64,000 nucleotides of DNA from Penicillus capitatus (Eukaryota > Plantae > Chlorophyta). Both the position numbers and the translations under genes were made by a program. Of this stretch, positions 3,954-28,200 are shown in pieces (positions within the stretch are counted from its first letter, which is position 1; every line of letters begins with the position of its first letter). The DNA lies in NCBI GenBank assembly GCA_965649825.1, contig OZ287702.1, forward strand, positions 1,230,786-1,294,785, read 5' to 3'. Below the pieces are notes generated by a model, which worked only from the letters and a program-made list of their open reading frames with translations, was not told the origin of the DNA and searched no databases.

Positions 3954-6900
3954 TCAGGACTCGATGGGGATGTCACACGCCTCTCCTGCGAAGCCAGTGA
4001 AGCACAGACACACGCCGTCCTTCAGGTTGCACACACCGCCTCCGTTGCAGTCCCCTGGACACGCCACTGGTGCATCGGCTGGCGGCACGAACTCGGGCTC
4101 GCAGCCCACGCCCGAGCACACTTTCAAGGTGCCGGCGCTGCTGAGTCCCATGACCTCTGGCTGGTCGCTGGCAAAGACGCGCGTGGGAGGCAGAGTGAAG
4201 TTGCCAACCGTGGCGGCCACGGCTCTCAGACTGACGCTGGTTGTTCCCGGACGGACCCTGTCGAAGGTGAAGGTCACGACCTGAGGCCTGGTCTCCTGCT
4301 GCGGACAGTTGAAGAAGAAGGAGCGGAAGAGACTGAAGAAGGGAACGGGGCAGAAGCCGCCTCCTGCGATGTTGGGATCCACGGGTTCCAGTCCGGCTGG
4401 CATCAGGACGCGGACGACCGTCTGTCCGAGCGCATCCGGCGTGAGGAACTGGACCTTGATCGAGACGACCGTTCCTCGGGGGACGACGGAGAGACCAGGC
4501 CCGTCGCCCTCCTCGGCGTCCTCCAGCTGGATGCTTCTCTCCACGAAGATGCCTCTGTAGGTCGGGAACGGCAGGAGCTCGGACGGAACGAAGTTGAGGG
4601 TGATCGCGACGCTGGCCTCGCCGCCGCCCACGGCCGACACCTGGATCGGCTCAGGCGCTTCTGGGAGTGCCTCCCACGGCACTCGGGAGGAGGCGACCGG
4701 CGCGGAGGCGTTGTTGAAGGAGGCCTCTAGCAGGGTCACGTTTCCGGAGACGGCCTCGAAGTCGAGGTTCGGCTGTGCGCTGCCGCGGGAGACGTCGAAC
4801 TCGACGAGCGCCTGCATCGTGATCAGTCGAGTGTAGGCGCTGAAGAGTCGGAAGCTGAAGGCGTCGGAGGCGGGACTGGCGATGTAGTCGCCCAGCCTCG
4901 GCAGCAGCTGTCCGTTGGTTCCGGCCCTGACCTGGGCGAGGAACACGAGCGCGTTCGCCAGGTCGCTTGCCGGAGCCGTGGCTCCGGGGAAAAGGGACAC
5001 GTAGGCGGTCCTGCCGGTGATCCGGAGCAGATCCGTCCACGTCTGGATGGCCAGAGCGACGTCCGGATTGGACGCGCCATCGGGCTCCTCCAGTCTGGCG
5101 AGGACGTAGTACGCCTGGCTCTCGATCGAGAGATTGGCGAACTCTCGGCTGAGGCGCTCCAGCGAGAGATCGTCGACGATGACGGCGTCGCCCGTCTCGG
5201 GCTGCCAGTCGGGACCGAGGGCGGCTCGACCCAGTGCCACGGTGGAGAGGGACAGGGGTCCTGAGATCGCTGCCCTGCGGGCCTCGACGGCGAGGTCTTC
5301 GAGCTCCGAGCCCGCGACGGACCTCCAGATGTCTCTGGCCTCCAAGAGGCTGCCTGAGCGGGACTGAACTTGCGGCAGTGTGTGTCCGACGAGCTGCTCC
5401 TCGACCTGGTTGAGCAGGAAGAGACCTCTGGCGTTCTGGAAGAACGACGGGTCATTTCTGACGGGATTCTCTGGGCACGGCAGGAAGGGTCGCAGTCCTG
5501 CTCTTCTGCTCGTGAGGCCGCCTCCGCGACTCAGCAGGTCGACGGCAGGGTCGAAGCTCTCCAGGACCAGTCCGATCAGGGAGGCGAGCTCCTCGCCCAC
5601 CACATCAGGCGACGGGTTCCACGGGTTGTAGGGATTGATGATTCCCGGAATTGTCGCCGCCGCCAGAGCGAAGTCGGCGTCCACGGGACACTCGAAGGGT
5701 CTGGGTACGCTAAGGATCTGCTCGGCCACGACCAGGACGGCTGGCTGGCGGCCCACTCCGGCGGTGATCAGGATCTCCCCGCTTCCGGGGACGGCGTCGG
5801 GTAGATCGATGCCCTCCACAAAGGTCTGCGTGTCCTGACCCTGGACTGTGAATGAGGTTCCGACTGTCACTGCTTCCTGCAGTCCCTCGATCTCGATCTC
5901 CAGCTGCAGAGCGTCGCTGTTGCCTAGGCCATCGTCGGCAGTCAGGGTGAAGTTGGCTGCTCCGACTGAGACGGCTCTCAGTGTGAAACGCGCTTCTTCT
6001 TGGCCATCGGCGCCGACATCGACGTTCATGACATTGCTGCCAATGAACTCCAGAGGACCATCCACGTCGGCAGTCAGGGAGACGGAAGCATTGGCGGAGC
6101 CGGAGACCGTCACCACGGCTCCTGCCTCGAAGACGTCGCCGGTGCGCACAAAACGGGGAACTGATGGTGTCAGGGAAACCTGTCTCCTCACGATGATCTC
6201 GGATTCGGCACTGCCAAAGAGGCCCCTGGCAGAGACAGCGTACGCTCGGACGACGAAGGTGCCCAGATTGGAAGGAGCAGTGAAGGTGGCCAGAAGAGTT
6301 CTATCCTCTGCTACACTGGTCTCGAAGAGCGGGGTGCTCACGAAGTCGGATTCCAATCGGAGATTGTTTGCAGGAGCGGAATCTTCGACAAGTGCGAATC
6401 CTTCTGAAGCAACGGCAACTGATTTAGCAGGTACAGGTGTCGAAATACGGGCAGAAGCAGATGGAGCACCATCATCTACCACCACAGCCGCCGACAAGGC
6501 GACAGTTTCTACTGCGCCCCCTTCAACTACAATTTGACCTCTTCCACCGAAACTGGGTGTAAAGAACCGAGAGAATTGAATTGTGATGAAGCGGCTCTCC
6601 GAGTCGATATACTCTTCTTCTGTCTGGTCGATTCTGAATCGGTCAGTCAGTCTGTTTGCCAGGAAAAACCAGGGATCCAGGCGACTGCGGCTGTTGTGGT
6701 AGTCAATCAGCGCTTGCAGTCCAGCAGGAGTGGTGATGAATCGACTCATCGACGTCGTAGACATGGAAGCGGACAGGTCCAGAAGGAAGCTGGATGAAAG
6801 ATCCACAAGCGGAAAAGGTACAAGATCCAGAATAGCTCTGTCGACGGCAATCAGCGTCACTTCTGTGCGCGTTGTGGTGTCGAGCTGCACTTCAATCGTT

Positions 6901-9900
6901 GTGTTGTCACCAGGACTCACAACAGCCACTCCTGCATCCTCGGCCGCCTCTGGAAAGGTGATGGTCACGTTCAGCTCTCTGGGAACACTGGGAACAACTG
7001 TGATGCGATCGTTGTACATTTCTGTGTGTGGAAGAGCCAGATCGAACAGTCTCGAAATGGGAACTGGTTCTTCTGTCGCTAATCCCTCTGTCTGCCTCGG
7101 CACTGCTATCACGATCGACAGTCCGCAATCAAACTCGCAGAACTCATCGACGTCGATGCTGATGACGGATCGACCGGAGTCTACAGGCGTCACCTTCTGC
7201 TTGATGCCTTCCACTGTTCCCCACGTGACGAGAGCATAACTGCCATCGAAAGGATTCTCCACCAGGATCCGCTTCTCTGATCCCAGATCCAGTTCCCCTT
7301 CTGCGAGGTCGGTGAAGCCAATGGGCAGGTGGGAGGAAAGGGGACTCTCATCCCAGCTTTCCTGTGTTCTTCCGAGGAAAATGCGTTGACAGACCGTCGC
7401 GCCTCCAGAAGTGGCACATGCTTCGATGGCGAACCGTCCAACGGACGGCAGGACAAAATCGCAGTAGTCTTCTGAGCCTGCATCCAAGCGCCTTAGTGAT
7501 TGGAAGCGTGAAGACAAGGAATCAGTTACCTATCTCAAATTCACAACTAGTGACGCTTGTGCCATTCAGAGGTCGATCACTCGTCCGGATGAAGTCGCTG
7601 TCTTCGTCTGGTAACTGGATCAGCTTAATCGTGACAGTTTCAAGTTGATTGTCTCCCTCGAGAGGTCGCCCTTGAAGGTCTGCGGCATCGACTGCGACTC
7701 CGAAAGTTTGGCCAGGAATGTTCGTCTGTACCGTCCTCCTCAGTGAGAGGCGGAGATCTGCTGCCTCGATGCGGACGCTGGCCGACTGTTCGATCAGCTC
7801 ACTGGTCGGTCCGACGAGTTGAAAATCGATAGAGACCCTGGACCCGACGTTAGGAAGAGGTTCAATCTGGGAGAGATCGATCACAGCAGTGCCGTTCCCA
7901 TTGTCGTCGGTCGTGATGGTCAGCTCCCCCTCTGCTGGTTCTTCTTCTTCGTCTCGGTTGAAGTCCACGAGCTCCCAATTCACTGCGATCTCGGATCCGC
8001 CCACTGCCGATCCAATGAAGGACTCCACGTTCACTTGAATCTCGATGTTTCCAGCTGGCGTGACGAAGAAAGGCGTGTCCACAGTGAGCTCGACCGTCGG
8101 CAGACGCGGGTCGCCAACCGTGAAGGAAACTGAGTCGCCTCTGATGCGACCGTCTGCAACGAAGTTGACTCTGTAGTTCCGCAGTTCAGCCTCAGGAGGG
8201 ATCGGAATCTCTGCTTCGTAGCTGCCGAATTCAGGATTGATCGTGACAGGGAAATCGCTGTTCTCGGCCAAAGGAGGTGAAACCTCGACCCTTGTCGAAG
8301 TAAGGCCTCTGGCGGGTACGAGTTCTCTCCCTTCCCTCTGCCAGACATATCCTGCAACACTTCACTAAGTAAGCAAGTGCACGTGACCAGTGCCGAGCGC
8401 CTACCCTTGACGCGAAGCACTTCATCGGGGCGGACCAATGCCCGATCCAGGACGATCCTGTCTTGGATACTCACGCCCTCGATGCTGCGGAAGAACACAT
8501 CTGGAACGTAGACAAACTTCGGTCCGATTTGCACGACTGCCACGATGTTATCCAGTGAGGTTCTGATTCCTTCCAACAAAGCGACGCCACTGGCATCCGT
8601 CTTGCCTTCTGCCAAAAGCTCCGCATCGGTCAGCTACACAGAAGAGATCGTTCCAGAAATGAATCATTCTAGGACGGATGCTTACAAGTGACCGTCCTCC
8701 AAAGAAGAACACTGTGGCGTTCGCAACGGGTTTTCCAGTTTCCATAGAGGTCACCCAAGCTGCTACCTCCTGTTCTGTCGACAACTGACTGTATGTCACA
8801 ACAGTAACTTGGATCGTCGTTTCCAGAATGACATCCGCTAGGAAGGATCGAAACCTGCCGTGCAACACAAGTGTCAGGGGAGTGGGAATTGTGAGACGCT
8901 CACCTGCAGAGTTCGAATGCCATGACTCCAGCAGGATCCAGCACGGAGGAAGCATCCCTTTCCTGCAGCACGGCGCCTGGCATCCTTGAGCCGACCAGCT
9001 GATCATCTAATCGACAATTAAGATCAGACAGTATGCATTGTGAGTGTGAGTTCACCTGGCGCTCCAAGGTAGCGCCTGTAAGATTCCCGAGTCCCGCCAC
9101 CTATGACAGGAAGAGCTTCTGCTGGCGAAGTGATGGACCAGATGTCGACGACGCTGCCGGTTGAGCAGACCCCATTGTCATTATTGTCCAGTCCTTTCGA
9201 AAAGGAAAGGACCTTTCTGCCCCAGTCCTGAGATGACTCGAAAACAGCGTATCTGGGGAATCTTCCAGTTGATAGTTTGCTGAAGTCTGCGTCGACGCCC
9301 CGTGTTCTAAATTCGAGGCTGGAAGCCTCAAGAGGCAGACCAAAGCCATCCACAACTCTGTCGGATGCTCCGACAGATACCCTGAGTACCGTGTTATGCA
9401 CAGGACGCCCCAAACAAAGAAAGGTACTCACGTGTATAGCTCACTTGGGCCGATCGCTGTTCTCAGACGCAGCACTGTCTTTTCCTCTTGTGTCAGATTG
9501 AAGGCTACCTGCACGCATCCCTTCGACTTGCCAGTAGTCGAAGGGGATTGACTCACTGTTTGGTTACTGCTGTCGACAAGTGTGATTGGAATGTCGGCGA
9601 TGTCGGTTCCGTCTGCCAGGCCGTGTGGAATGTACAGGTCCAGGAAGGGCGTTGTAATCCTATTGACTGAGCTTTCGGAAAACGGAACGACAAATCGACG
9701 CAGTCCTCCAAATGTCACTCTTAAATCGGCTCCCAGCTGTCCAGAGGCATTCCCATAGTCCACTCCTGCTCCAAGGAACAGGGCATACCTGAAACAGACG
9801 AGCTCAGCAATAGCGCTTTCTTCAGAAAGAGTGAGTATACTCGATTCCCATTCGAAGCTCGCCATTCAGAGTGACATTTGCGCATTGGGCTTCTCCGTTC

Positions 9901-10849: not shown

Positions 10850-12067
10850 TTTCACCAAAAGGCGAGGAAAACAGAAGTGAAAGGTGTTCGTTCCTTCGTG
10901 GATTTAATTTCAGTCCAACTGTGAAAACGCGTGTGAACTTTTGAAAGCAGGACAGAATACGAGGCTGAAAATGAGAAGGAACATTTAGGTAAAACGTCGC
11001 ATCACAGATGTCCGCTCGCTGTCCGTAAACCGAGCGAACTTCCTAACCGCCGCGCCACAGGTCAGATCTCTCGCTTCGGTGGACTGTCCTCAATCGCGAA
11101 TCTGATTCTTTATGTACTAATATTCGTATCTGCGAAGAAGGGTACATACACCTCATGTGACGTCAATCATGGCACAAATGCGAATCTCAGACAGCGAATG
11201 CCGTTTGCCACATACATCTCGACGGTGTCTATTCACCACAGAAAATCACTTCAAAACGGACAGACACGTCGACAGAGCCTAGGAAGCTCAGCAAACCGTT
11301 GAGGTATGAATAGGTGTTTACACCCCTGACGGCGAGTCACCGAAATCCGATTACTAATTATTGCAGAGATGAAATGTGTGCACAGGATTATGCTCTCCTC
11401 GGTGCCGAAAGAGCATGCATACATTGCATCGAAGTCAGCAGTAGTTCGAAAGCCCAGAATTGACAGAAGGTGGTCAACGTCAATCGCCTAGATCTTTCGA
11501 GCCAAATGCGCCTTTAAAATGATCAAATCACCATATCAAAATCCTTCCGACGCCTGGAAGACTTGCTCGGGGTTCTAAAAGACGAAAAACAAAAGAGCCT
11601 CAATCGAGTACAATTTCAATCTTCTTCGCAGAAAAGAGCAATGTCGATTAGCTAACTGCAGGCAAACGATTAGAATCGAGTAACAGAGCGCAACACAATA
11701 ACAGGAGATCGATGTCTCGAGAGGACAGGACAATACCATCACAGTGTTTGCTCTGCACAGACTCTACATGAATTGTAAACAAACGACATCGTTTGCACGA
11801 TACACGCACTCTGTCTTAGCAAGCTACCTTCTGACGCTGCTAGTATGTACGTTGACCGTCAGTTGGTCGGTTTTCAATGAAGAACTATGAAGCTGAAACG
11901 GTAAACTTCTTACCGTGCTACGATAGATAGATGTGCCACGGATGACATCTACCTAACCGCAGTTCGCGATTAAAGCACGCTGCAATTCAGGATGACGAAC
12001 AAAGACGCACTTAAGAAGAGAAGCCAGAGACTTTCCTCTATCTTTTCGCTGTCTGCAGTTTCGCAGC

Positions 12068-15000
12068 ATGACTTCCAGAACTCTGACGCTTGTTTTGTTG
12101 TTCTGCCTTTCCCCTTTCGGCTCCTGCAAACCACACAGGTTGTTATCTCTCTGTTCGCGGCATCTGTTAATACCGCATTGTACATGTAGTGCACAGCAAA
12201 TCGGATACGTCCCTCGTCAAAGAACGTGTCTATCCACGACGCTGGCAGTCAACGAATTTTGTCGCCGTTCGCGTCTGTCGCGAAGTTCACTGAAATGCAT
12301 TGAGAAGTCTTCGAGTGCTTTCGTCTTCGAGGTACCACCCCTATCCATTGACTGTATCCGCAAAAGAGAGGCGATCAATACCGCCGCGTTGTCGTTTAGA
12401 TTCCCTCTCGGAAACCCAGAGCTGCAAAATCGATTAAGGAAGCGGAGAGATTGGCGGCTGATGTGAGGGCGCGCGTTGGATGCGACTTTCTCTTTTACGG
12501 AGCGAGAAATGTCGTCGTCGACGGAGAGGAAATCCGCCAGTCGCCGAACAGCTTCCGTTTGCAGCCGGCGGTTCCTTTCCACCTTGATCGAATCGACCAA
12601 CCTGCCTTGCCCACCAATGGGGAGTTTGTCTGGAATGCGACAGGGCAGCGTGTGACCGTTTTTATAGTGGCTTCCGTAAGGCAGTCCATCTCTTGTGCTT
12701 GTTCGGTTGGACAGCATAAATCAGGGTATTCTGAAAGAACATGAAGAATTCCGCTATGGAAAGGAAAACGGACAACGCGTCTTCGTCGGTGCAGTGGGTC
12801 CGCAACAGCGAACGAGGAACTGTCTCGAACACGGCACACAGGTGAAACTGCTACAGCGTTACTGACGTCCTGTCTGGGTACTCGTGCATAGGTCGCGAGT
12901 GTCGTTGCAGGTAACCTTCTAGGCGTCGCAAAAGAGGCGACTGTCATCGACGTCTCCGTTTTGCCATGTCCTCGCAGAAGGAAAGATACGAATCCGACAC
13001 GTGCGTCGCATGCCGCCATGTATGCTGTATGCGTAAGGCCTTCTGCTTCCAGTCTCGATTCTGGCCGGATTGAGATTTGTCGAAGAAAACGCGGCAGCTT
13101 CGCGTCCTGCGATTCTTCTCTTGCCTTTTCACGTGGATGGCGTCGATCCAGGTATTGAGGACATGATTTCACGTGTACATGAAAACGGCATCTTCGTCGT
13201 TGCCTCAGCCGGCGACAAAACAGGCAAGCAGCAGGTCCTCTGACGCTCTTTCTGTTGAACAAGCGCTTGTCGTCATTAGGGTTTTGTACATGTACCCCTG
13301 CAAGAATGAGATCGGTCTTCGCCGTTGGCTCAACGGATGAACGTGACCGAGTCCTCTACCGAAACAATCAACAGTCATGCATCAACGTGTATGCTCCCGG
13401 GACGAAAATAACAGCCGCCAGTGCCAGATCCAAAAATGCGACGAGGTCCTTACCCTCGTCTCCGACGCATCTCGGTTATGCGAGGGAGCACCAGCGTGTG
13501 ACAGATTTGTCAAAGGAACGGCTTTTTCTGCCGCCGAAGTCGCAGGTGTCGCAGCGACAATACTCGAAAAGGAACCAGATTTCAATCCTCTTCAACTGCG
13601 AAAGCACATACTACAGAACTACACAACGTCGATTGGAAAAGAGGTAAGGAAGTCTCTTTCTTTGACGACATTGTTTTCTGTCCTTGTGTAGAAAACTCCA
13701 TTGATACAGTCACTGTCCTCAGCAGAACGCGATCAGATCTCCACGGGACAGTTGGTGGCTGCGAAGACGCGTATAATGCCTCTTCCGGGTCTTGTTGTCC
13801 ATCCAAAACGCATTCCAACAGTCCATCTCTTTAAGAACACGGCAGAAAGCTCCAGTAAACCACAAAGCACGTTTTCTGAGGAGCTCATTCGCCGATTCCA
13901 GAGATACTGACTCTGCGCATCGCAAACTACCGGAATGGAGAGTTGTCCTGGCGTGTTCATTTCAGAAGCATTCATGCAGATGATTCCCTCGAGTGGATGA
14001 CCACAGAACGCATTAATGGGACGTTGCGGGACGGAGAGAGTACCAGGCTGGCCGTAAATCTCTCGTCTGCGCTTGACAGGCCTTGTCTCAAGCAAGGATT
14101 TATAGTGGTGCACTCGAATGATCCAACACTCTACGAGTACTGCTCTGTCGATAGACATCTGTTCGTAGCGACATGCCTTTGTGGCAGGCTTCAGATTCCA
14201 ATCGAAGTGGTTATCTACTGTGAGCGCATGTTCATGTCTCACCCTCAATACGAAATGTCGATAGAGAACGCAACCTTTTCAGACAGAAGACCAACGTCGT
14301 GGGCTCCGCCAGCTCTGGAAGGTTCGTTTCGACAATCGTCCTTTCTCTGAAAATCGCCAATATCACTTGTGTGACAGAAAAGAGTGATCTCCTGTACATG
14401 GAAGCTATTTTGAGTCTCTCTCCATCGGTTGCAAACTCGGACGTGTCAGAAGTGAATGCCGACAGTGCGTTGTCTTCAGCAATTCGATGCCATCTCACTC
14501 AGTGCGATGCTTTGAGGACCGTCGAATCTGGAGGAGATGTTCCTGCTGAATGACGAGAACTGTGGCAAATACGTCATAAGAATGACGCGTCCCAGGTTGA
14601 GTGAATGGGATGGCGAGAATGTTTTCTGCCTCTTCATCATGGACAACACGGTTTTCGACATCAAGGGAAGACCATTCCCAGAACAGAGAGCCTGCGTTGC
14701 CTTCGCTGCCAAGTTCAATTCAATAACTTCGTTTGCGCACACTTCAGCAGATATCTCTGTGATGCGCAGACCGCAAAGTCGGTTCTACGGCACTTTTCTC
14801 TCTGTTGGTTATAGCACCGTTCCTATGACGATGGATTCAGACGTCCTGCTGATGTTGGCCTTTTCTGAACGCGTCGAGGGATTCCACGACTCTCTGGTGA
14901 AAGTGAGAATCGGACAGTCACGCGTTGTTTGGACGTCAGTGGTGACAGGTGAGCAAAGGAAAAGTGGTCTCCATTTCGCCAGCGCTACCGACAAAGACAC

Positions 15001-15225
15001 TCTACTACGTCCAAATCTGGATTCCAGAAGACTACTTTGGATTCGTTTCCGTTTCCCTCTCCAAGGAAGGCATCGTCGACGCAACAGGTTCGACAACGAC
15101 TGCCCATCCTCCTCAGGGCAATGACGCATTGCGCCCTTCTAGGCAATGGACTTGTGAAAGAGGTAACACTCACGTTCGAAAGAGTACGTCACGTCGCGGT
15201 TCTACCAACTGCAGTGCAATTCTGA
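12068..15225 (+). CDS. Secreted subtilisin-like (S8A, proteinase K/aqualysin-type) pseudoprotease with C-terminal Ig-like domains (multi-exon)
   Basis: Signal-like MTSRTLTLVLLFCLSPFGSC. Spliced exons give PFHLDRIDQ, VTVFIVAS|GILKEHEEF, NCLEHGTQ|VASVVAGNLLGVAKEA, GIFVVASAGD, VFAVGSTDERD...SCINVYAPGTKITAA, and R|FVKGTAFSAAEVAGVAA. C-terminal exons contain HSNDP...IPIEVVI and LAFSERVEGF...IVDAT|GN. The stop at 15225 depends on a predicted final intron. Confidence 0.85.
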
Positions 15226-15310
15226 AGACCACAGTAGACATAACGAACAACCTGTTCTGAGTATTCAAATGAAATCTGCCAGTTAAGAAGTGTTTGCTGT
15301 TATTCCTTGT

Positions 15311-17571
15311 TTACAAAAACGATGTCTCCGGTTCGTCTTCAACCGACTGCGTTTCGAGTTCGAATGGCAACCGCACGTTGTCGACCAGATAAATCACAGA
15401 ACTGCATGCCACGATGATCTTCGTCACAACAGTGATTTCAGCATCGCCCTGTCCTCTCAACGCAACTCCAATTGAATTGGAGAGACTTCTAACAACGGAG
15501 AGCTGCATCGTCTTTCCCTACGGGTGCTTGGTTTTATCAAAAAGTGCCGAATGAAAGGACGGGTTACTGACGTCGATGGACAGAGCCGTTGGGAATTTCC
15601 TCCCATGTCGAAGCGATCTGAGAGTGAGAGGCCTCGTCACCACGTGATAGTCGACAATTTTTTCGAGAACTGCTGGATCTGTGAGCAGTGCTGATAGTCT
15701 CCTGTTTTCGAGATCGACGAAAAGAGAGTAGAACGCTGCGTCCGTCGGCGCAAAGAGAGTGATGGCGAGATCTTCGTCTGCAAACTGGGGAATGCGACCT
15801 GCAGTGCGAACGACATCGTTCAAGACACGCAAATCGCTGTTCTGTGCCAAAACGTGTGCAACAGACGTACACGCCTCATGTGTATCGTCACTGTTGGGGC
15901 GCATGGTATCTCCATCGGCGACTGAACTCATTGCCGACCGGATCGCGTCCCCCACATCGAACGGCAGTAACGCCATGTCGATCTTATGGACAGCACCATC
16001 ACAGGCGTCATCCACATCCGTCTCGATCACGTTTGCGCTGCTACCGATGCCGGCGATATCGATTCCCCCTTTTCCTGCCGCAACGACCAGATGTTCGCCG
16101 TTCAGGGTGGTGAGGGCGCCATCTATCAACGCAGCGGATTCGAGATTCTGTCGGACGACGTGGTAGTGCACTACATGTTTCAGCATATCCCTATCGTCAG
16201 TGGGTACTTCAACACTATGGCTTGAACAGAATGGAAGCTGGACCTGTCGCGACGAAGCTGTGGATAGTCGACGCCGACTTTGCCCAACCCTGTCTCAAAT
16301 GCTGTGTTCGTCGGAGCAAACACGGTGAAAGATGTCCGTCCTCCTCGGATCGTCGAACCCAGACCCGTGTCTTCCAATGCTCTAGGCACATTGCACGTTT
16401 GAAGATCTTCTTCTCTGCAAGCGATTGGCTTACTGGAGAAAGATTGAGAGATCCTCATGCTGTGCGATGGCGCCGAGAACGTTGCTCTCTGGATCGCAAT
16501 CGCGTGTTTTTATGGACAGTTCCGACGGGCTCTCGAGGACGAGGCGGATTTCATCGAGCGTTGTTCCAGGCAGTAACACGTTGTCGACTGTGTAAATGAC
16601 CGAGCTGCAGATCTTGACGCCACCGTCGAGAATGGTGGCCGAAGAGCCAATACCGTCGATCTCGTATTCGCTTGAGCCAAAGAGCTCTTTCCCCGGGACA
16701 GGAGTGGGGAACGAGAACGTGCTCGCCAATTCATTCGCATTCTTGATTTCGAAGGGCACGATGTGGTACTGCAAAACCTCTTTCAACTTCTCAGGATAGT
16801 TTTCGACAAGAGCATCGAGCGGCATTTCAAAACCTGCTGCCGCGTTTACAATTGCCTGCGACAGGAGCTCGACACTCGAAGATCGCGCAATGAAGAAGGG
16901 ACCTCATCAATCGGCGCAAAGAGCGAGATCGATGCATTCCTCTGTTGCAGTGTCTCTTCCAGACCGACGGATCGCGCGATGGTGAGCAGCAGTGTGAACT
17001 GGGAGGCGTTTGAGAGTTCGTCTAATAAAGATGTCGGGCACTCCCCCGTATCTCGATCGGAAAGGACTTCGGTCAAGCGTGCGTCTTTTCTCTGGCGAGG
17101 CACCTCGGTTTCTGCCGAGGCACATGCCAGATATTTTTCGCCGTCCTCACAATGGCAGTGGTCACATGCCTGCGCACAGTCGTTTCCATTTCGCATCCAC
17201 CGACGGTCACAGTTCGCGTGTGTTATCTACAAACCAGGAAGAAATCTGTGCAGAAACGTGCCTTGGATGATATTTACGACTTCGTCGCAACTTCGTCTGT
17301 GAGGTGGCAAGGCATCCAAGCAGGCGTGCTTCTGTTGACTCACCATCTGTCTCGCTATGCATCAGAATCGACATTTGATTCGAGGGCCTGTCGGTTCTCG
17401 GGTACCGCAAGCGATCCAGATGTAGAGTAGGACACACAGTGGGATCTTCATTGCAGGAAGGGTGTATCCGATATCGCCAATCGAATTCGCGATAAAGAGG
17501 CACCAGGAAAGAATGGGAAATCTGTGATCACGGGTACGATAGTGACCACTTTCTCTATAGCGACGGCGCAT
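15311..17571 (-). CDS. Fasciclin (FAS1) domain protein with three FAS1 repeats (multi-exon; 5' end uncertain)
   Basis: H1 motifs SLFAPIDE, TVFAPTNTAF and TLFAPTDAAF. YH motifs LQYHIV, VHYHVV and VDYHVV. H2 motifs IYTVDNVLLP, VHKIDMALLP and IYLVDNVRLP. A hydrophobic N-terminal segment lies near 17400-17570. Confidence 0.88.
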
Positions 17572-18599
17572 AGGAAGACACACTTAACGTCGCTTCACTT
17601 CAGACGGAACGGTGACGTGACAATTAAACGACGTCTTTGACGTCGTGTTCGCTAATTCGTCTACGAAGCCATTTTCTCTCCGTAGTCGTCAACACAAATC
17701 GCGGATGATGACTATAATCGAGTCGCTCTTCTCTTTACTGATTCCCTCCTTCCGCTTGCACTGCTTAAACACTGACTGGTATCGTTGACGTGTTCTGTAA
17801 GCGATATAACGTTAACGGGCTTTTGGCAGCAACAGTTCACGATACGATGTGAAGCGATAACTGTATTTCGAAATAACAGCGACTCAAAAACCTTATGAAG
17901 CCAGTCACGCAAGCTAGAGCTTCAAGCAGACAGACGTGCATAAGCTAACTCGTCATGAAGGAATGCAAACGGTACTCAAGATAAGTTCGCAACCTTGAGG
18001 GCACAATCATCGTGGGAATCGTTATCTATCTCTAAAACGAAACTCGTCCAGAGGCTTTAACGAACAGCTGACGTTTACCAAGTTCAGTGACTCTTCTAAT
18101 AAGCAAACTTTGATGCTGAAAACTCTGTCTGGTATAAATATTAAACTTACACCATGACGGTAACCGACTTTTGATCCAGATCTCTCATTGCATGGCAGAA
18201 TTTCTTTCTCTGCGTGGCGTATGCATGGATCATCCTGAAATCGAAATTTGCACTTCAATTCCATGCAAATAACTTTGTTTAGACACGTATTTCGTTCGCT
18301 GAGAATCGCAAACACCGGATCTTCTAACTCTTACACTTCGCTCTATATGTCTTAGGTATTAAGGGCAATTTGAGTTCTTAAGATCTTTTAAAGCCGCTGT
18401 TCAGACTAATGTCGAAGTTCTTCGATTCTTTTCCTCGTACTGGTTTAGAAACGATGGTGTAAATGTCTCGTTCTTCGTCTAATGTTCACGTTTCATCATT
18501 CCGTTTGGACTTCGAAATGTCCAAAGTTCGTCAGTCCACTGTTAGAATCAAAATTACCAAACTATTTCCACGGAAATCCCGTTAATAAAAGATCGACTC

Positions 18600-19790
18600 T
18601 ATGGTTCTCGAACAACAAACCCACAGACTGTTAAATGCTCTTATGTCGCGTCCACTATTCGTAGGAATATGGGATGCAGATATTGCAAGACGGCGTTACA
18701 TGCATTACAAGTATCGTAAAATATCCTCTTTTGATTGCTCTCAAATAATCCAATCTATATACCATCTACAATATCAACAACTGATAAAAATCTCAAAACG
18801 ACTACTATCAAGATATTGAATGTTGTTTAAACAATCACAAGTATGTGCCATAGTCAAAACATAAAATCCGTTTGGCTGTAGATGTTACTCAATAAAACAG
18901 TGTAGAGAATGTAACGTTAGTTTTCATACAAACGACACCGCGTAGTTCTTTTTAAATAAAACATCAAGGCTGTCTGTTCTTACCAAGATGACAACAAATG
19001 GAGACAGAGAATATCCCATTGCTAGGCCTTTGACTTGTTCATAGTATGCAAATCCGCTTCTGGTCTTGGTCTTTGTGATGACACCGGCTAATGCGTATTA
19101 AAAAATCTTGATCAAGATCATTTGCCACTCTTTCTCTGGTATCCATCCTGCAAAGTCTATCAGGTATTTCTAGTCAAGAGTGGATTATCATTGACTCTCC
19201 ATCTTCAATAGCAAGCTACTGTATTGCGTCCCTTGCATGTGCTGTTTCCAGAATGTCGAAATCTAACGTCCATGGGAAGATAAATGTGCTAACTACTGAT
19301 TAATGGTTCTTGTTAATGTCGAAAACCTTGTACTAGTGGTCTGGTTGGTAGGTATTAAAGCTTTTTCTTAAGTATCTTGTGTACTTTGGGCATTGCATAC
19401 AGCTCCGCTGCAACGTCGAGCAGAAGAGGCTCCTAGCGGTCTGCAGGAACTACCATAAGCACCAATGTCTTCGGCTTCAGGAGCTTCCCAAACATGGAGA
19501 ACAAGTTTGAAAGCGCGCGCGGTCATCAATGGATGTTCGTTTGATTTTCTTCACGATCATCAACGCCATTCTGCCTTGTTCGCAGATGATTTGTCCGGCT
19601 TTTGTCGTTGACATAGGAAAACAAGTACCCGCGTCATGATGATCTCAGCAATCATTGCGTCGCAGTAGCTCTTGTGGATGGACACTAAGATAAGTATATC
19701 ACACTTTCTAGCGTTGTACACGCTTACACCGATAATCAGGCTCTTATTCATTGCGTACGCTGTAATTGTCCGTGATGGCAACGTTCACAG
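18600..19790 (-). mobile_element. Degenerate Penelope-like retroelement, reverse transcriptase remnant
   Basis: Minus-strand fragments are collinear with PLE RT motifs: NKSLII...LILVSIHKSY (about 19650-19750), LYAMPKVHK...PTRPLV (about 19340-19400; compare LYGLPKIHK..PlRPIV), YYEQVKGLAMGYSLSPF (about 18995-19050; compare FYEQxxGLAMGSPLSP) and IQYLD (about 18810-18825). Many stops and frameshifts, AT-rich. YxDD is not recognisable and no GIY-YIG domain was seen. Confidence 0.75.
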
Positions 19791-20685
19791 AAGGCACACT
19801 CGCTGCATATAGACCTTGGGTTAGGATTCTCTAAGGTATCTTGAACTACTTCTGTGTTCTTGGCTGCAAGAAAATTCCGCAAAACAAATGCGTACGTTCA
19901 AGTCAGACAGTGTTCTTGACGTTTGTCTTGGCATGGACATTCCACAAATATGAGATCATGAGGTTAGACGTAACGCTTACTCTGCGCCCAACAAGCTGCG
20001 ATATTTCTGATGAATCTTTTAAATTGATTGTATGAATGGGAAGGTATTTCGCCTTGTTAAAGAACGACCCTTAAGAAATCGATTTGTCTTGCAGTGTGTC
20101 GATCTTTACAGGCACGCGCAACTTATGATTGTTCTCCATAATGAGTCGCCAACGTCTAAAGGATTGTATAAAACGGCTTGGCAGAATAGGTGATGTTAAA
20201 GAAACCGCACAGACGCCATCATCGCCACTAAGAAGCCATCCCTCTACCAGCGATCCTTATCATACCCGACACACCTTTTATAGCATTCATTGTGAAGACC
20301 AACCCAGAGGTTGACGCTTATCACGAGAAATCTGTAGCAATAGTTGTGAAAAATTCCCTCCGACAGCCTCGCCCTCCAAGTCCCTTGGGAAGTGCTCGGC
20401 ATGGACACGTATCCCCCATCGCTTTGCACGGCGGGGGAGACAACGACGGGGAGAGTGAGTGCCTGAATCATCTCCAGGTTGGTTACTCTCACAAGCACAG
20501 CGGGAGTCTTGAGGTAAGATGATGATATTCAAGGATATCGGAGGCCACGCCAAAAGTTACAGCGATGAGACAGCTTGTTACGACGACGATAGACAGCGAG
20601 CGTTTTGACAAACAGAAACAGATTGTATGTGATTCACAGACACAAGTATAAACTCAGATGTCAAGCGTAAAAAGATTCATGTGCC

Positions 20686-20833
20686 TGTTGGATCAGGAAA
20701 CGTCACTGTCGAATGACAAGACGTTTACCTATATTACGACGTACTGAGCACCTGTAAAGAATACCCGTCTGGCTCTTCTCGCACCGCGGCCTCTAAGCGC
20801 TCGGACCAATCGCCGACCCTATCGGTCCTAACA
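20686..20833 (+). repeat. 5' LTR of TRIM (148 bp)
   Basis: Base-for-base identical to 21388-21535, with TG...CA termini. Confidence 0.95.
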
Positions 20834-20835
20834 AC

Positions 20836-20847
20836 TGGTTTCGGAGC
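20836..20847 (+). promoter_or_regulatory. Primer binding site, tRNA-iMet-like
   Basis: TGGTTTCGGAGC is a 10/12 match to the canonical iMet PBS TGGTATCAGAGC and sits directly after the 5' LTR. Confidence 0.7.
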
Positions 20848-21375
20848 AGGTCGTTCTTGGGGTCGCGTTTGGGAGCGTTGGTGTCGAAGGCCGCTGCAGA
20901 TCCGTTTTGTCAGAGATTCGTCGACTGGCTCGGAAGTCGTGCGCCGTTTAGTTTAGAGAGTCTCGACTGTCTGATCTAGTTTTCTGAGTCCGTATCCGTC
21001 GTTTGTATCGTTTCCGTGAAAGTTCTGGTCTTTATCTGTGACAAGACGAAGCGAGAGGCGAGTGACAGTGCCTCGGAAGCGTAAGAGCCGAAGGCTGTGG
21101 ATGGTGATTCCCACAGAGGGAGAAGCATGGGAGCGTTGAGGAGTGACGCACATGGCTCGACTCCTGGCCAGCTGGCGTTTCGAGTACCAAGTAGTGTCCG
21201 ACGTAGAAGCCGAAAAGAACCGTTAGAAGATCGACGCGCCGATTTCAGCAGTCGTATTGGGTCGACATTAGGATTTCAAGCAGAAAGAGTCGGGGCCTAA
21301 CTACATTGTGTCCTATCCACTATTCTGTCGTTTCAAGGACTTTGTCTCAAGAGAGACTGTCTGTTGTTTATTGAT

Positions 21376-21386
21376 GGGGGGAGGGG
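21376..21386 (+). promoter_or_regulatory. Polypurine tract of TRIM
   Basis: GGGGGGAGGGG ends 1 nt before the 3' LTR. Confidence 0.85.
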
Positions 21387-21387
21387 T

Positions 21388-21535
21388 TGTTGGATCAGGA
21401 AACGTCACTGTCGAATGACAAGACGTTTACCTATATTACGACGTACTGAGCACCTGTAAAGAATACCCGTCTGGCTCTTCTCGCACCGCGGCCTCTAAGC
21501 GCTCGGACCAATCGCCGACCCTATCGGTCCTAACA
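21388..21535 (+). repeat. 3' LTR of TRIM (148 bp)
   Basis: Identical to 20686-20833. Confidence 0.95.
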
Positions 21536-22126
21536 TGCCCGACCCTCGCTTGGATGCTCAATCCCTGATGTGATAACAGGAAAAACATATGAAGTTCAAG
21601 AGTGAGTTCCCACTGAGATTCTAGAAGCTTCCACGGAACTTCAGCAAGAACTTCACAAGAGCTCACTCCTAGTCATCCTGGTTCATGCCAATTCATCGCG
21701 ACTCGGCGGTGACGGTTAAGTCGCAGCTAGAGGCACGCGAAACACAAACTGACGGAAATGCCTATTATTACAACGACGTCCCATCAGCGTCCTTTCAGAA
21801 ACGCACCATACTTTGACATGGATGCAGCCGTCTTCCCGTTGTGCGAACTCCGAACAGTCAGCGGAGCAAAAAGAACGAACCAACCCAAACACAGTCTAAA
21901 ACGTAGAAGAACAGAAAAGAAAGTCCCTTGGGTGTGTGAGACTCGAATGCTCGAGGGTCAAGGACCCCGACCCTTGTGGTTTCCTCCTGGCTAAGGGCCA
22001 CATTGATTCTGTCCTTTAAATGCTATGGTCAGAAAATGGCTAGAAGAGATGACTGAGCCTAAGAGACAAATGACAGAAGAGTAATGATGACTGTAAAAAA
22101 ACAAACAAACTAACCTGTAAAATTCT

Positions 22127-23010
22127 TTAGGTACGTTGCGATTGGTTTTCCCACATGCGATTCAAAAATGACTCGGTCATTTGGCCAAGTTTTCGACGGC
22201 TGGGAAATGCAGCGGACAGCCTGCCTATCAGGCTTCCGTACCTATGGTTCAAAGAGTGAGAACTCTTGGGAAACAGGCGAAAAGGACGCATGACCTCCTT
22301 CTCTAACCTGGTTTCCACCTTGTCCACCGCTACTTCGAATTCGAGAGTGTCCTCTTCTAACCCGAGCTTCATTCTGGCATGCGTGTATCCCATGATGGCG
22401 CTGGTCCTCCCTCACTGCGGATTGTATACTCGTCGAAGCCAGGGGAGACGATCCATGCACGCTTCGAATTCTCAGGCCGAGGAGTTTGGCAGTGGTTCGA
22501 CCCATTACATTTCTAGGAAGCTCGGGGTTCATGAAGAAACAATGCGGAAGAGCAAGTTCCCCGAGCTCCTCCGCGGCAATGTATCGAGGTCCCGGGGGTC
22601 AGCGCGTTGCAGCGAGAGGTGGCGGAAGGGCTCGTGCTGAGGACGAAGATGGTTCACGGGGCTCAGGCTCTTGTGACCGTGGGGGCAGGGGGATTCGTAT
22701 CCCTTGACGGGAGTGGTTGAGCCGTGTAATGACCACCCTGCCGTTCTGACCATCGGACACAACGGGTGATAGCTCCCGGTGAAAGATACTAATAACAATA
22801 AGGCAGTGATCACTGAACGTGAGTTGTAGTTTGCGACTGTTGGATGCATAGGTTGGCGAACCCTGAACCACGAAGGGTATTTAAAGCGGACATTCTCCCT
22901 GTAAATATCTCGAGTTCTTTGGTGGTATCATCTAGGTGTTTTCTGTCGTCGTTGTGTGTTCTTTGAATTCCAAGTACTATAACGTTGTTACATCGATTTC
23001 CAAAACGCAT
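22127..23010 (-). pseudogene. Decayed coding relic of unknown origin, possibly TE-derived
   Basis: ORFs 22599-22871 and 22242-22532 are in the same frame with one TGA between them. Flanking ORFs 22810-23010 and 22127-22393 are in shifted frames. No family recognised. Confidence 0.3.
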
Positions 23011-23521
23011 GCAAATATAAACCGGTTAAGTAGTCAAAATACCACATCACATCTCCGCTAGAGTCTTCTCTGCCTTGCACCCACGCTTCTCGACACAACA
23101 ACGATCCATCATATCAAGAACTTGCGCCTCGAAACGATCCATCGCTTTAAGACAAACATGATCAAACATCCCATCCGCCGCTTTTTGAATACGCGTCGGG
23201 GAAACGAGGCATAAATACTCTCTCCACCGCTGTTCAAACCCAACGATGGTTCATGTTAGTATATCGTCATAAACAAAACGTGGTAAACATTGCTACGACT
23301 TTCAAAGGTCCTAAAGATTCACTATTATTAATGTAGCATCTCTTAACCGCTCTGTAAAACGAACGGATCCACAGTGGAAGGTTATTAGCGGACTATCCCC
23401 GTAAAAGGCGCTCTCCTTCGACGATTGTGTTGTAACGCTGAAATGTAAAAGCTGTCCGTGGTGATGTTAAAACGGCAGGTAGGAAATGTTCTTTAATTCC
23501 AAAGCGGCAACCGCTATGATC

Positions 23522-24289
23522 TCATTGTAACGCTCTGTTCAGTAGCCCACGTAGTTTGATATTGTCAATATACCCGTCCATCTCACTCTTCGCAATCCAA
23601 GCGTGATCCACAAAATCAGAGTTCGGCAACAAGGTCGCTTGACCCGACAGCAGCTGCGCCTTCATGTAGAATTCCGTTCGCGCTCTCGCTCCTTCTTCAA
23701 AAGTGTAATGAGCTATTGGCCAATTCGCGATAAAGAAAACATCTGTCTTCGGTCCAATGCACTCCGCCAAGGCACGTTCGCCCGTTTTCCGAATCGTCTC
23801 TCCCGCGCTATGAAGGGTCGCCGGAAAGGACCATCCTCCTGAACGTGTCTTCACAATGAAGTAGAGATAACGATCCAAGAAACGCATCAATGACTTTGTA
23901 TCGCCTTCCTTGTCCGCTTGTGTAATGCGATCAAGTTCTTGCCATTCAGCACCTTCGTTCTGCTGCGCGTCTTCTTCCTCTTCCTCTTCCTCTATCAACT
24001 TTTTCTTTCTCTGCCACTCCTGTGGCAAATTCTGCTCTCTTTGTTCCCTCACCTGCTGAGACCACATTTGATACTCAATCTCCCAATCTTCAGGAAGAGG
24101 CCGCAGCAGTGGAGCGCGAGCAAGAATGCAAGATCCATGGATCGGCAGTTTGACGGCGTCGTTTTCCTTCGGGGCTTCAGGATTCGACGCAGATGTGAAA
24201 CACAGATGCCCAAAAAACCCGCGGCGCGATGACGGTAGAAGCAGGCGCGACAGAGAACGAAGACTCAGCGTCGTCGTCATTAGACACAT
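23522..24289 (-). CDS. MRPL46: Mitochondrial ribosomal protein mL46, intronless
   Basis: Ser/Arg-rich presequence, then RITQADKEGDTKSLMRFLDRYLYFIVK, WSFP...GETIRKTGERAL, VFFIANWPIAHY, FYMKAQLLSG and DHAWIAKSEM, typical of the mL46 Nudix-like fold. Confidence 0.88.
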   Translation of the reverse strand: MCLMTTTLSLRSLSRLLLPSSRRGFFGHLCFTSASNPEAPKENDAVKLPIHGSCILARAPLLRPLPEDWEIEYQMWSQQVREQREQNLPQEWQRKKKLIEEEEEEEDAQQNEGAEWQELDRITQADKEGDTKSLMRFLDRYLYFIVKTRSGGWSFPATLHSAGETIRKTGERALAECIGPKTDVFFIANWPIAHYTFEEGARARTEFYMKAQLLSGQATLLPNSDFVDHAWIAKSEMDGYIDNIKLRGLLNRALQ

Positions 24290-25257: not shown

Positions 25258-28200
25258 ATGAATGGTCCCGCGACTGACACGGAACTACAATGCGAATGGG
25301 CCAAGACGCTTGCAGCGAGTGGCGATGTGCTTCGTGTGGATGTGGAGGCACTTGTGAAAGCGGCCCTCTCTGCGCGGTCGACGGGCGTCAAAGGTTCACG
25401 GGCTTCGCGTTTGACACAATCCAAGACAGTTGACGGTAAGCTGTTTCTGGACAAGCATCATCTACCCGACCTGTCTGCCGCACCTCAGAAATCCGACTGC
25501 GTTGTCTGCTTCCCCTCTGCAGCTTTCTCGAAGAATCAGATGGACAGGTGCATTCGCATCATAGCGAAATGACAGTGGTGATGGTGTGTCTAGCATGCGG
25601 ATTATTTGGTACCTTTGATTCTGGACCATTTCAAGAGCCTCCCCAAAGTTTTCAATCTACATCCGGAACACACGTCCAATTTCCAAAAAGCCGTGACACA
25701 ATGTCTGCTGAAGCTGAAAGCGTAAGAGTCTGTACGAGCAGAGGATAGAGAAGGAAATGGACGTTTTCTTCAGGGTGATGGTGTTGTCGTCTCTTCCGGT
25801 GGAGTTCGTCGAGGACATCAGTCAGACAGTCCACGATGTCATCAAAATCTGTGTGGATCCTGAAGGAAAGGTATCGTCGGGACCGACCACGCGATATTTC
25901 TTTGTACGTGCCCTGGCACGCGATGCCGAGCTGGAAGACAACATCCCGATGCTCCCTAAGCACGCTTATGCTCTGTTGCAGTGGCTTCATGACCATTTTT
26001 ACACACAAGGTCTTCACTAATCCTCAGCAGGGGACCCTCACAGCTGTGTGACTTAGAGGCGGATGCGTATATGGTATCACACATCTCTGTCGATCTCGTT
26101 TCGAGTGGAATGGCAACAAAGGGACTTATCGATCATCTGGACGATGAGAAAATTATGGCCATGACAATTCCGATCGTCTCGGCCGCTTTTCCGATCGATT
26201 CTCCAGCCAATAACGCGCTCATTGTCAATTCCCAGCCGTTTGTGGACATCTCAATGGGAAGTCTAAGTCGGATTGTTTCGTTTGCTTGCGAATCTGTACA
26301 GTCGGCGCTGAAACCGATCCTGGAGTCCGGTCCAGACAGAAAACTGAGACTGGATGTCGGACCACAATCCGGCATGTCTTTCTCGAACAGACAGAGAGCA
26401 CCGTCAGGAGATCTTGTTCGGGCCGCTGCAAAACTGGCGACCCGTTTGGTCTACCGTCTCTGGGAAGGGAAGCGCAAAGGAACGTGCACTCTCCACGGCG
26501 ATTTCTCAACAGTTAAAGATGAAATGCTGAAAGTCGTGGACATCATGTTGGAGGTGGCCGAGACCTGCTTGAGCACGGCATGGGAATCTGGCGCTCTCCA
26601 TGTAAAGAAGACAGACGGTTTGCTCTCCGACATCAACAGGAGTGTTGTTTAGGTGGTGGCAAGCGCAAAGCATATGTTGCAGGAAACAATGCAGTTGGTT
26701 TCGGCGGGTGTCAGTATCGGAGAGTCCATGAGCGATAATCTGAGTCGTTTGCAGATGCTGATGCTCTCATCGATTCGTCTCCTGGAAGAGGTCGGCGAAA
26801 CGGACACTCCTTACACCAGTTCAGGACAGGGCTCTGTTCGCTCGAGGGGGTCCACTTCTGTGGAGTGCACGGTCGCTTTGGAGTGGGATGTCAGCCATTC
26901 ATTCATCAAACAGAGCTGCTGCGATGCATCTCCCATCCTGGAACTCTGTGGGGTGGCATCTGAAGTACTCTGTGCCACGTTGGCCGACGGATGGCGAGCA
27001 AATCAGAAAGCAGATGTCCGCGAAGTGGCAATTCCTCTCGGCAACATCATGGTCGCCTCAGCCGTTGCAGGCACGAGTGGAGAACGCCAGATTGCTGCCC
27101 TGTCACTGGGGCGTCTGTTTGTGCTCGTCGGAGGAGATCCAGACATGGCTCGTCTCCTTCTGCCACTCCTCATGGACGGAATGCTGGGTTCAGACAACAG
27201 CACCCCGACCCCTGTCTACGCCTGTCTGCTTCATGTCCTAGCCACTATCGGAGGTGTGAGCGGACAATGCGGTTTCCCTTGGGCATTGAATCAGGTGCTG
27301 GAACAGATGATCAAGCTCTATAAGGACCCTCATGGAATCGTCTCAGCAGGATTGATGTTTGCAACAGGCAGCGAGGGCAAACAGAAAGGCCAGATGGCAA
27401 GCGCCTTTTTGCAGTTGACAACACTCTTGCAGGATGCATCACCGTCCATTCGCAAAGACGTTCGCCACAAACTTCTGGCCCTGTTTTCAGACTTTGGCCT
27501 TCATGCCAATGAACTGAATGCGATCTATGACTTGGGTGCTCTACTCCCTGCCATCGCTGCAGCCTGTGAGAATCTGGATCGAACGCTGCCTCGTATGATT
27601 GCCAGTTACAATGGCAGCATCCAGCAAATCAATCACTTCGAAAGGCCGCGATCTGACATCTCACTCATTCGCAACTTCCGTAATCTCTGGATGTACTCTG
27701 CCATATACAAGTTCTCGGGTATCTCGAAGAAGGGAACGCTGTATGAATGGCCCAGAGACTGGCCGACAGCTCTGGGCAAGATTGCGGCTGCAACACCGGC
27801 ACTTTCGAGCATCGACGGTCCTCAGAGGTCAGACACTGCAAGGGAACGACTCCAAGCTGAGCTTCAGGACAGGTTCGCCCTTTGTTCTATCGTCCACGAA
27901 GACGCTATTCGTTCGCAGGTTGGCCAGAGCAGGTCCTCATGCCGACGCTGCATCTCTCAATAGTCTACTCAAGGAAGTGGTGGCCCCTTTCGGCAACACC
28001 TACTCTGTTCCCATGGCCACCCCTGCAGTCTATGCATACCTCCTGGCTGTGGCAACACTGGAACTGTCTCGAGCCGCTCTGAGTCCGCTGCGTACGTTTC
28101 ATGATACCTCTCCTTTAGCTTCCGTCATGTCCTACCTCTCTGTGGCTGTCGTCGGTTCTCTGGAGTCCCAATGGTTCAGAGCTATTGCAGAAGCTGTTTT

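Follow-up and report, generated by a model that had tools for sequence, protein, structure and literature searches.

A 16-exon gene of Penicillus capitatus predicted to encode a secreted subtilase-fold protein without peptidase activity

The DNA analysed here is a 64-kb stretch of the genome of the green alga Penicillus capitatus, called the window below; all coordinates refer to it unless another locus is named. It is eukaryotic DNA with a G+C content of about 50%. On its plus strand a subtilase-like gene of 16 exons (12068-15225) encodes a protein of 787 amino acids (aa). The product begins with a signal peptide, followed by a pro-like region of about 100 residues, an S8 domain (approximately aa 126-405) and finally about 390 aa of C-terminal extension. 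Of the four residues which constitute the catalytic machinery of S8 peptidases, three are replaced. We consider it likely that the gene is functional and that its product retains a secreted, proteinase-K-type subtilase fold which does not hydrolyze peptide bonds, yet has been kept by selection.

The spliced product matches the Pfam profile PF00082 (Peptidase_S8) over positions 1-276 of its 288, at E=1.7e-22 and with 80.5 bits where the cut-off is 21.8. In the PDB 134 S8 chains are matched at E<=1e-3. The best solved relatives are proteinase K 2b6n (E=1.1e-37), the keratinase 5wsl and aqualysin 4dzt; PCSK9 follows at about 1e-21. The protein falls into the proteinase K subfamily (S8A): its nearest PDB matches are of the proteinase K type, and the sequence FHLDRIDQ represents the N-terminal (W/F)(G/H)LDRI motif of this group.

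Catalytic positions were assigned by HMMER alignment to 2b6n, that of the oxyanion-hole Asn by alignment to closer family members. The D-H-S triad of an active S8 peptidase is represented by Ala162, His199 and Ala357, and the AGN motif reads AGD. At the oxyanion position bacterial enzymes, when aligned pairwise, are shifted by one residue, so that either Gly or Asp stands opposite Asn. Among closer relatives ASAGD of the window protein aligns with ASAGN (Ostreobium P0005), TSAGN (Bryopsis P0008) and SSSGN (fragment P0004); under either alignment Asn is absent. Each substitution is a single nucleotide away from a canonical codon, i.e., GAT to GCT, AAC to GAC and TCY to GCY. An earlier sequence-only reading of this DNA had named the same four codons, with Asp, oxyanion Asn and Ser replaced and His kept, and all four are found exactly where it placed them. 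Its claim that the exons join in frame without stops and keep the fold motifs holds as well, the spliced product being a true S8 domain. The span which it flagged, 12650-13560, was too short for the gene and missed the C-terminal half.

For comparison we used the best 80 S8 loci from a profile scan of Joint Genome Institute (JGI) metagenomes, which are of 29-35% identity and probably bacterial. Asp, His and Ser are present at the aligned positions in 80 of 80, and the AAGN motif is equally invariant (80/80). Thus, the loss of three out of four residues is beyond ordinary variation in the family. In subtilisin, S221A and N155 mutations lower activity by orders of magnitude. To judge by its residues the window protein cannot be a conventional serine peptidase.

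A protein search retrieved one close relative, P0001. It is a prokaryote-style read-through open reading frame (ORF) which occurs on two contigs of the European Nucleotide Archive metagenome ERZ26696514; the contigs measure 1.39 Mb at 184x coverage and 0.44 Mb at 177x coverage. The corresponding loci, L001 and L002 (ctg303805 and ctg303557), are 98.9% identical to each other over the right 14 kb and 88-92% identical upstream; they resemble the two haplotypes of a single diploid eukaryote. Their subtilase alleles differ at seven coding positions, three of them non-synonymous. Around positions 2050-3800 L001 contains many mutually similar stretches, resembling a tandem array. Synteny between L001 and the window extends from 10898 to 27214, and nucleotide identity is 80% over window positions 11908-17930.

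When the exon boundaries of the window gene are transferred to L001 and L002, an uninterrupted ORF of 787 codons emerges from 16 exons of equal length, without a single gap. The orthologous protein is 76% identical to that of the window. All splice sites (30/30) are kept; the sole changed donor is that of intron 8, which is GC in the relative. Exons share 83% nucleotide identity and lack indels altogether in 2364 nucleotides (nt), whereas introns share 76% and differ by 16 indel events over 794 nt. Randomly placed indels would all miss the exons with a probability of (794/3158)^16, or about 3e-10.

The ratio of non-synonymous to synonymous substitution rates (dN/dS) was determined for this one species pair by the Nei-Gojobori method with bootstrap intervals. 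It is 0.30 for the whole protein (bootstrap 0.25-0.37), 0.26 for the S8 domain (0.16-0.37) and 0.31 for the C-terminal extension (0.21-0.42). Two neighbouring genes have ratios of 0.19 and 0.36 at similar dS (about 0.4-0.46; about 0.43 for the subtilase gene). Thus, the subtilase gene is constrained like its neighbours. Differences between window and orthologue accumulate at third codon positions (197, compared with 116 at first and 89 at second positions). The longest identical runs comprise the former His helix with 24 aa and the former Ser helix with 19 aa. Since both helices are part of the buried core, their conservation argues for maintenance of the fold and not for residual chemistry. 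Taken together, the comparison indicates purifying selection on the protein as a whole since the split from the orthologue, both in the S8 domain and in the C-terminal extension. The protein has the hallmarks of a pseudoenzyme as far as these can be read from sequence: it is an S8 homologue which lacks residues essential for catalysis, and its intact ORF is subject to purifying selection.

The sequence-only reading had preferred a selected non-catalytic protein over a decaying pseudogene. The intact orthologous ORF, the indel-free exons and the low dN/dS, well below 1 for the entire protein as for the S8 domain, speak for this view. The roles which it offered for the protein, a decoy, a lectin-like binder or a scaffold, are guesses. 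It had also proposed to ask whether orthologues share the substitutions, and the answer is split. In the orthologue the Ser codon is replaced by GCC (Ala) and the Asn codon by GAC (Asp), which gives the same residues as in the window; the catalytic Asp, however, is kept (GAT, in ILDS), so that Asp to Ala is not shared.

This difference allows the losses to be ordered. Ostreobium P0005 retains D, H, N and S; Bryopsis P0008 retains D, N and S in a model which lacks the His exon, and both read GTS at the catalytic Ser. Fragments P0006 and P0007 retain Asp, fragment P0004 retains Asn. As the losses of Ser and Asn are common to window and orthologue while distant relatives keep these residues, they are most simply placed in a shared ancestor. 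As both replacements exist in both species, the measured selection acted on an already inactive enzyme. The catalytic Asp, still present in the orthologue, was lost later and in the window lineage only. The simplest order derived from these sequences is, therefore, that the nucleophile and the oxyanion Asn disappeared before the split, that the then useless Asp followed, and that His199 remains. The order of loss is readable in this family, with Ser and Asn first, Asp later in one lineage, and His and the fold under selection. Another family fragment, P0040 (38% identity, on a 34-kb contig of a Logan assembly), reads TSGL at the oxyanion Asn; its covered region excludes the Ser position. Catalytic decay has thus possibly occurred more than once in the family.

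The gene model was built by splicing the three-frame translation of 11.9-15 kb, in which subtilase pieces are split by short, stop-containing stretches with GT...AG ends. It has 15 introns of 46-68 nt each, 14 of the GT-AG type and one, intron 6, of the GC-AG type (Table 1). The GC donor of intron 6 was retained because it is conserved (gcaagc in the window, gcgagc in the orthologue at L001 10764-10819) and fits the family alignment, and because the alternative, a GT at 13236, implies an intron of 30 nt and was rejected. The donor of intron 8 is GT in the window and GC (gcacgg) in the orthologue (L001 11180-11229). An earlier C-terminus, at a TGA at 13908-13910, was dropped: the orthologue has no stop there, and a 1-nt indel lies directly upstream. 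A 47-nt intron, also kept in the orthologue, links the S8 part to seven further exons. The Bryopsis protein is colinear with the model up to the last residues, thus the junctions it covers are confirmed independently, including the whole C-terminal half. Those around the His exon, which is missing from the Bryopsis model, are confirmed by the Ostreobium protein. For a family in a poorly sampled eukaryote this yields a complete gene model together with a C-terminal extension that is not annotated otherwise.

Table 1. Features of the subtilase-like gene and of its surroundings in the 64-kb window.
Feature	Position	Strand	Content and evidence
Exon 1	12068..12138	+	ATG and signal peptide (MTSRTLTLVLLFCLSPFGSC...), aa 1-24; ATG and hydrophobic core kept in L001
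Exon 2	12190..12331	+	N-terminal pro-like region, aa 24-71; IGYV...EFC motif also in Bryopsis and Ostreobium proteins
Exon 3	12400..12675	+	End of pro-like region and start of S8 (PFHLDRIDQPALP...VFIVAS), aa 72-163
Catalytic Asp position (Asp32 of subtilisin)	12670..12672	+	GCT, Ala162, in FIVAS/G (slash, exon junction); opposite Asp of vIDTG in 2b6n
Exon 4	12725..12841	+	aa 164-202, carries the kept His; junctions confirmed by Ostreobium P0005
Catalytic His	12830..12832	+	CAC, His199, kept, in EHGTQ; opposite His of HGTH in 2b6n
Exon 5	12892..13000	+	aa 203-239 (VASVVAGNLLGVAKEATVIDVSVLPC...); donor after NPT backed by P0004 and P0005
Exon 6	13053..13223	+	aa 239-296; GC donor ACAG/gcaagc; junction matches family alignment within one residue
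Oxyanion-hole Asn position (Asn155 of subtilisin)	13214..13216	+	GAC, Asp293, in SAGDK
Intron 6	13224..13279	+	GC-AG
Exon 7	13280..13445	+	aa 296-351; gene model and family alignment
Exon 8	13505..13643	+	aa 351-397; former Ser helix (GTAFSAAEVAGVAATILEK)
Catalytic Ser position (Ser221 of subtilisin)	13521..13523	+	GCT, Ala357, in GTAFS; opposite Ser of GTSM in 2b6n
Exon 9	13692..13854	+	aa 398-452; end of S8 fold (TPLIQ; FPLLQ and FPLLN in relatives) and linker
47-nt intron	13855..13901	+	
Exon 10	13902..14146	+	aa 452-533; first part of C-terminal extension (probably Ig-like)
Exon 11	14195..14321	+	aa 534-576; gene model and family alignment
Exon 12	14378..14464	+	aa 576-605; gene model and family alignment
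Exon 13	14517..14712	+	aa 605-670; gene model and family alignment
Exon 14	14770..14902	+	aa 670-714; AFSERVEGFHD motif
Exon 15	14949..15087	+	aa 715-761; weak Big_12 matches
Exon 16	15143..15225	+	aa 761-787; TGA stop after ...AVQF; stop and AVQF kept in L001
Alpha-2-macroglobulin ORF	3954..7517	-	1187 aa, uninterrupted, bacterial type
Fasciclin-domain gene	15518..16186	-	PF02469, E=1.3e-22
Segment missing from orthologous locus	18858..23256		about 4.4 kb
148-nt direct repeat, two copies	20686..20833 and 21388..21535		perfect; within the preceding segment
Housekeeping gene	23522..24289	-	
Housekeeping gene	26653..29203	+	
Housekeeping gene	34711..36093	-	

Downstream of the signal peptide the window protein has no further hydrophobic segment, and 15 Cys and 4 N-glycosylation sequons are kept between it and the orthologue. 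Signal peptide, Cys residues and sequons suggest that the product is a secreted glycoprotein. Residues 1-138 give no Pfam match at E<=10, and hence none to the Inhibitor_I9 propeptide; the place of a prodomain is taken by about 100 residues which are conserved across the family. The C-terminal extension of the window protein has no Pfam match above threshold (Big_12 is sub-threshold only), no match at E<=1 in a word-indexed protein search, and no PDB sequence match at E<=1 with a three-sequence profile. In Bryopsis P0008 the extension matches Big_12 just above threshold, with weak matches to HYDIN/VesB immunoglobulin (Ig)-like, BACON_2 and Big_5. AlphaFold2 modelled exon 10 alone with low confidence (predicted local distance difference test, pLDDT, 54.6).

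When P0001 was compared by HMMER with 1.8 billion representative proteins, very few proved to be closer relatives than generic S8 proteins. Two are annotated, EP00803_P001018 from Ostreobium quekettii and GMH40773.1 from Bryopsis sp. KO-2023. The latter is a Bryopsidales green alga (NCBI taxonomy), and Ostreobium belongs to this order too. All named family members so far are from Bryopsidales green algae, the remainder being unnamed metagenome fragments. A protein search with the family profile returned solely the known orthologue ORFs and distant bacterial S8 proteins. The scan of JGI metagenomes gave no match with a single-protein query, and the profile query retrieved exclusively the S8 loci of 29-35% identity used above for comparison.

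Both algal proteins (33-36% identity) are colinear with the window protein, beginning with the N-terminal IGYV...EFC region and extending over the S8 domain; in GMH40773.1 the colinearity also covers the entire C-terminal extension. The motifs IANY, NDP, RP.SW, AFSE.VEGF.D, PEDY.G and LTF.R are common to the Bryopsis and window proteins. These alignments indicate that an S8 domain joined to this extension is a conserved algal architecture, typified by Bryopsis GMH40773.1. The two proteins differ from that of the window in that they keep Asp, Asn and Ser, Ostreobium displaying the His too; they are family members, not orthologues. The Ostreobium gene spans about 5.9 kb, whereas the window gene has tiny introns. 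No second subtilase was detected when the window was searched by tblastn with the model, nor in the 20-kb orthologous loci.

Upstream of the subtilase gene, on the opposite strand, lies an uninterrupted ORF for an alpha-2-macroglobulin (A2M) of the bacterial type, with A2M bait-region, A2M, bMG10 and C-terminal EGF-like domains; the CxEQ thioester motif is absent. Its G+C content of 0.61 (0.70 at third codon positions) exceeds the 0.51 of the subtilase gene, and it contains no intron although the region is dense in introns. Blastn finds no counterpart in L001, the similarity of which begins at window position 10898. This ORF may be of bacterial origin. A functional link to the dead protease about 4.5 kb away would be speculation. 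Downstream, a fasciclin-domain gene is arranged tail-to-tail with the subtilase gene, the stop codons being about 290 nt apart; it is kept in the orthologous locus with a dN/dS of 0.36.

Further downstream the window has a segment which the orthologous locus, though syntenic, lacks. This segment is rich in AT (G+C 0.41 at 18-20 kb), is devoid of ORFs of at least 150 aa and contains a perfect direct repeat; it may be an insertion or the remnant of a mobile element. The flanks carry ordinary eukaryotic housekeeping genes. Matches in the window include the N-terminal region of a PI4-kinase and a Vps54-like protein, and synteny points to an MRP-L46 gene. An ABA4-like gene exists in the orthologous locus only and hints at a photosynthetic lineage. 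The octamer TGTTTGTT occurs seven times in the window where 2.3 copies are expected, and none of 100 shuffles reached seven. This mild excess and the introns of roughly 50 nt had brought Blastocystis to mind, whereas the named homologues nearest to the protein come from green algae. Scans of the window yielded no tRNA gene, no Rfam match and no tandem repeat.

How else may the gene be explained? With three of four catalytic residues gone and with exon and intron identities only modestly apart (0.83 versus 0.76), one might suspect a decaying pseudogene, i.e., a disused, once active subtilase with an open frame which survived by chance. This is largely refuted and, in our view, very improbable. 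The ORF is intact across 16 exons in the window and in two haplotypes at a dS of about 0.43, all 16 indel events are intronic, all 30 splice sites persist, differences prevail at third codon positions, and none of the dN/dS values of 0.26-0.31 has an upper bootstrap bound above 0.42. An error of sequencing, assembly or gene modelling appears more far-fetched still. Each substitution is indeed but one nucleotide away from a canonical codon, and Asp to Ala occurs in the window alone. Yet Ser to Ala and Asn to Asp are found in three independently assembled haplotypes (window, L001, L002), and the Bryopsis and Ostreobium proteins together confirm the gene model for each of its exons.

Could the protein still be a peptidase, either by a non-canonical nucleophile or triad, e.g., His199 together with Ser359 in GTAFS, or by residues restored through splicing or editing? 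His199 and its surrounding helix are perfectly conserved, in the identical run of 24 aa, and in both species a Ser is located two residues past the lost nucleophile. We nevertheless give this very little credence. The substituted residues lie inside exons with junctions confirmed by two independent annotated relatives, and the Ser and Asn substitutions are encoded in an independent genome too. None of the S8 relatives examined has an alternative arrangement, 80 of 80 being canonical, and in subtilisin the S221A and N155 mutations have the strong effect stated above. The conservation of the His and Ser helices as buried core is expected from fold stability alone. A different proposal grants that the protein is non-catalytic and makes it the partner of an active paralogue, as a decoy which soaks up an inhibitor or as a regulator like CspC and CspA, instead of a free-standing binder. 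S8 pseudoproteases which regulate an active S8 enzyme are precedented (PMC7200643, PMC12880746), active members of the family exist in other taxa, and the missing Asn of P0040 suggests that activity was lost repeatedly in a multigene family. Yet neither an active paralogue nor an inhibitor was found in the 64-kb window or in the orthologous loci, and we regard a partner or decoy role as unlikely, though by no means absurd.

The preferred explanation, a selected and secreted protein with a dead subtilase fold, has weak points of its own. The case is built from genomic sequence. Asp to Ala is seen in a single assembly and could be an error, though the conclusion is independent of it. The test of selection compares one species pair, and a very recent loss of function in the window copy may have escaped it. 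A ligand, a partner or an active paralogue was not found, the paralogue search covering the window and the 20-kb orthologous loci. That the N-terminal region is a prodomain, possibly a divergent one, is an assumption. The extension is probably Ig-like, and the Pfam matches which suggest this are weak.

With these points in mind, a mode of action can be sketched. The protein would act by binding rather than by cutting. The surface of the subtilase fold together with the C-terminal, probably Ig-like domains would bind or regulate other molecules outside the cell, in the manner of the S8 pseudoproteases CspC and CspA and of the non-catalytic action of PCSK9. Active S8 enzymes cut off their own prodomain. 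In catalytic mutants and in pseudoproteases of this fold such autoprocessing fails (PMC7200643). Lacking a nucleophile, the window protein would not remove its own N-terminal pro-region and, consequently, is probably exported with the pro-region still attached, or this is trimmed by another protease in trans. A broader proposal is much more tentative, and we rather doubt it: an as yet undescribed family of eukaryotic secreted subtilases, whose extension of about 390 aa is an orphan, may have lost activity more than once, its dead members working as extracellular binders or regulators with the pro-region attached. If true, these proteins would parallel in eukaryotes what the Csp pseudoproteases, or PCSK9 by its mode of action, do elsewhere. 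The finding is of modest practical use: automatic annotation should not label the protein a serine protease.

A comparison with known systems puts the window protein into perspective. Among its closest solved kin are proteinase K 2b6n from Serratia and aqualysin 4dzt, with homology over about 265 residues at E=1e-37 to 1e-35. Like proteinase-K-type enzymes it has the N-terminal LDRIDQ motif and both the HGT and the GT(x) helix, and its secretion signal, N-terminal region and S8 domain follow one another as they do there. It differs by Ala162, Asp293 and Ala357, by the absence of a detectable I9 domain, and by the 390-aa extension. PCSK9 acts physiologically by binding and not by proteolysis, after a single autocleavage. 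It resembles the window protein as a proteinase-K-type S8 protein (E about 1e-21) with a signal peptide, a pro-region, an S8 domain and a C-terminal β-rich domain. In contrast, its triad is intact and it autoprocesses once, and its Cys/His-rich C-terminal domain is unrelated to the extension described here.

CspC and CspA of Clostridioides difficile are S8 pseudoproteases in germinant signalling, of which CspA has a Ser to Ala replacement (PMC7200643, PMC12880746). They too have a subtilase fold with substituted catalytic residues and do not autoprocess, and it is for regulation without catalysis that they have been retained. As spore proteins of bacteria they have another domain context and another biology; they are not close relatives and are absent from the best 60 of the 134 PDB matches. 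In Plasmodium, PIMMS2 orthologues variably lack triad residues and the HGT and GTS motifs (PMC5520436). By description PIMMS2 is similar in that it is eukaryotic and carries a subtilisin-like domain between a signal peptide and a C-terminal extension. It is, however, membrane-anchored and apicomplexan with S8 motifs which are far more degraded, whereas the HGT and GT(A) contexts of the window protein are well preserved.

S8-fold pseudoenzymes are thus already known, and nothing points to a new mechanism. Going by its sequence, the protein from Penicillus capitatus belongs to the known class of S8 pseudoproteases, outside of the Csp, PIMMS2 and PCSK9 families and with a domain context different from theirs, and it is a well-supported eukaryotic addition to the few pseudoproteases known with a subtilase fold.

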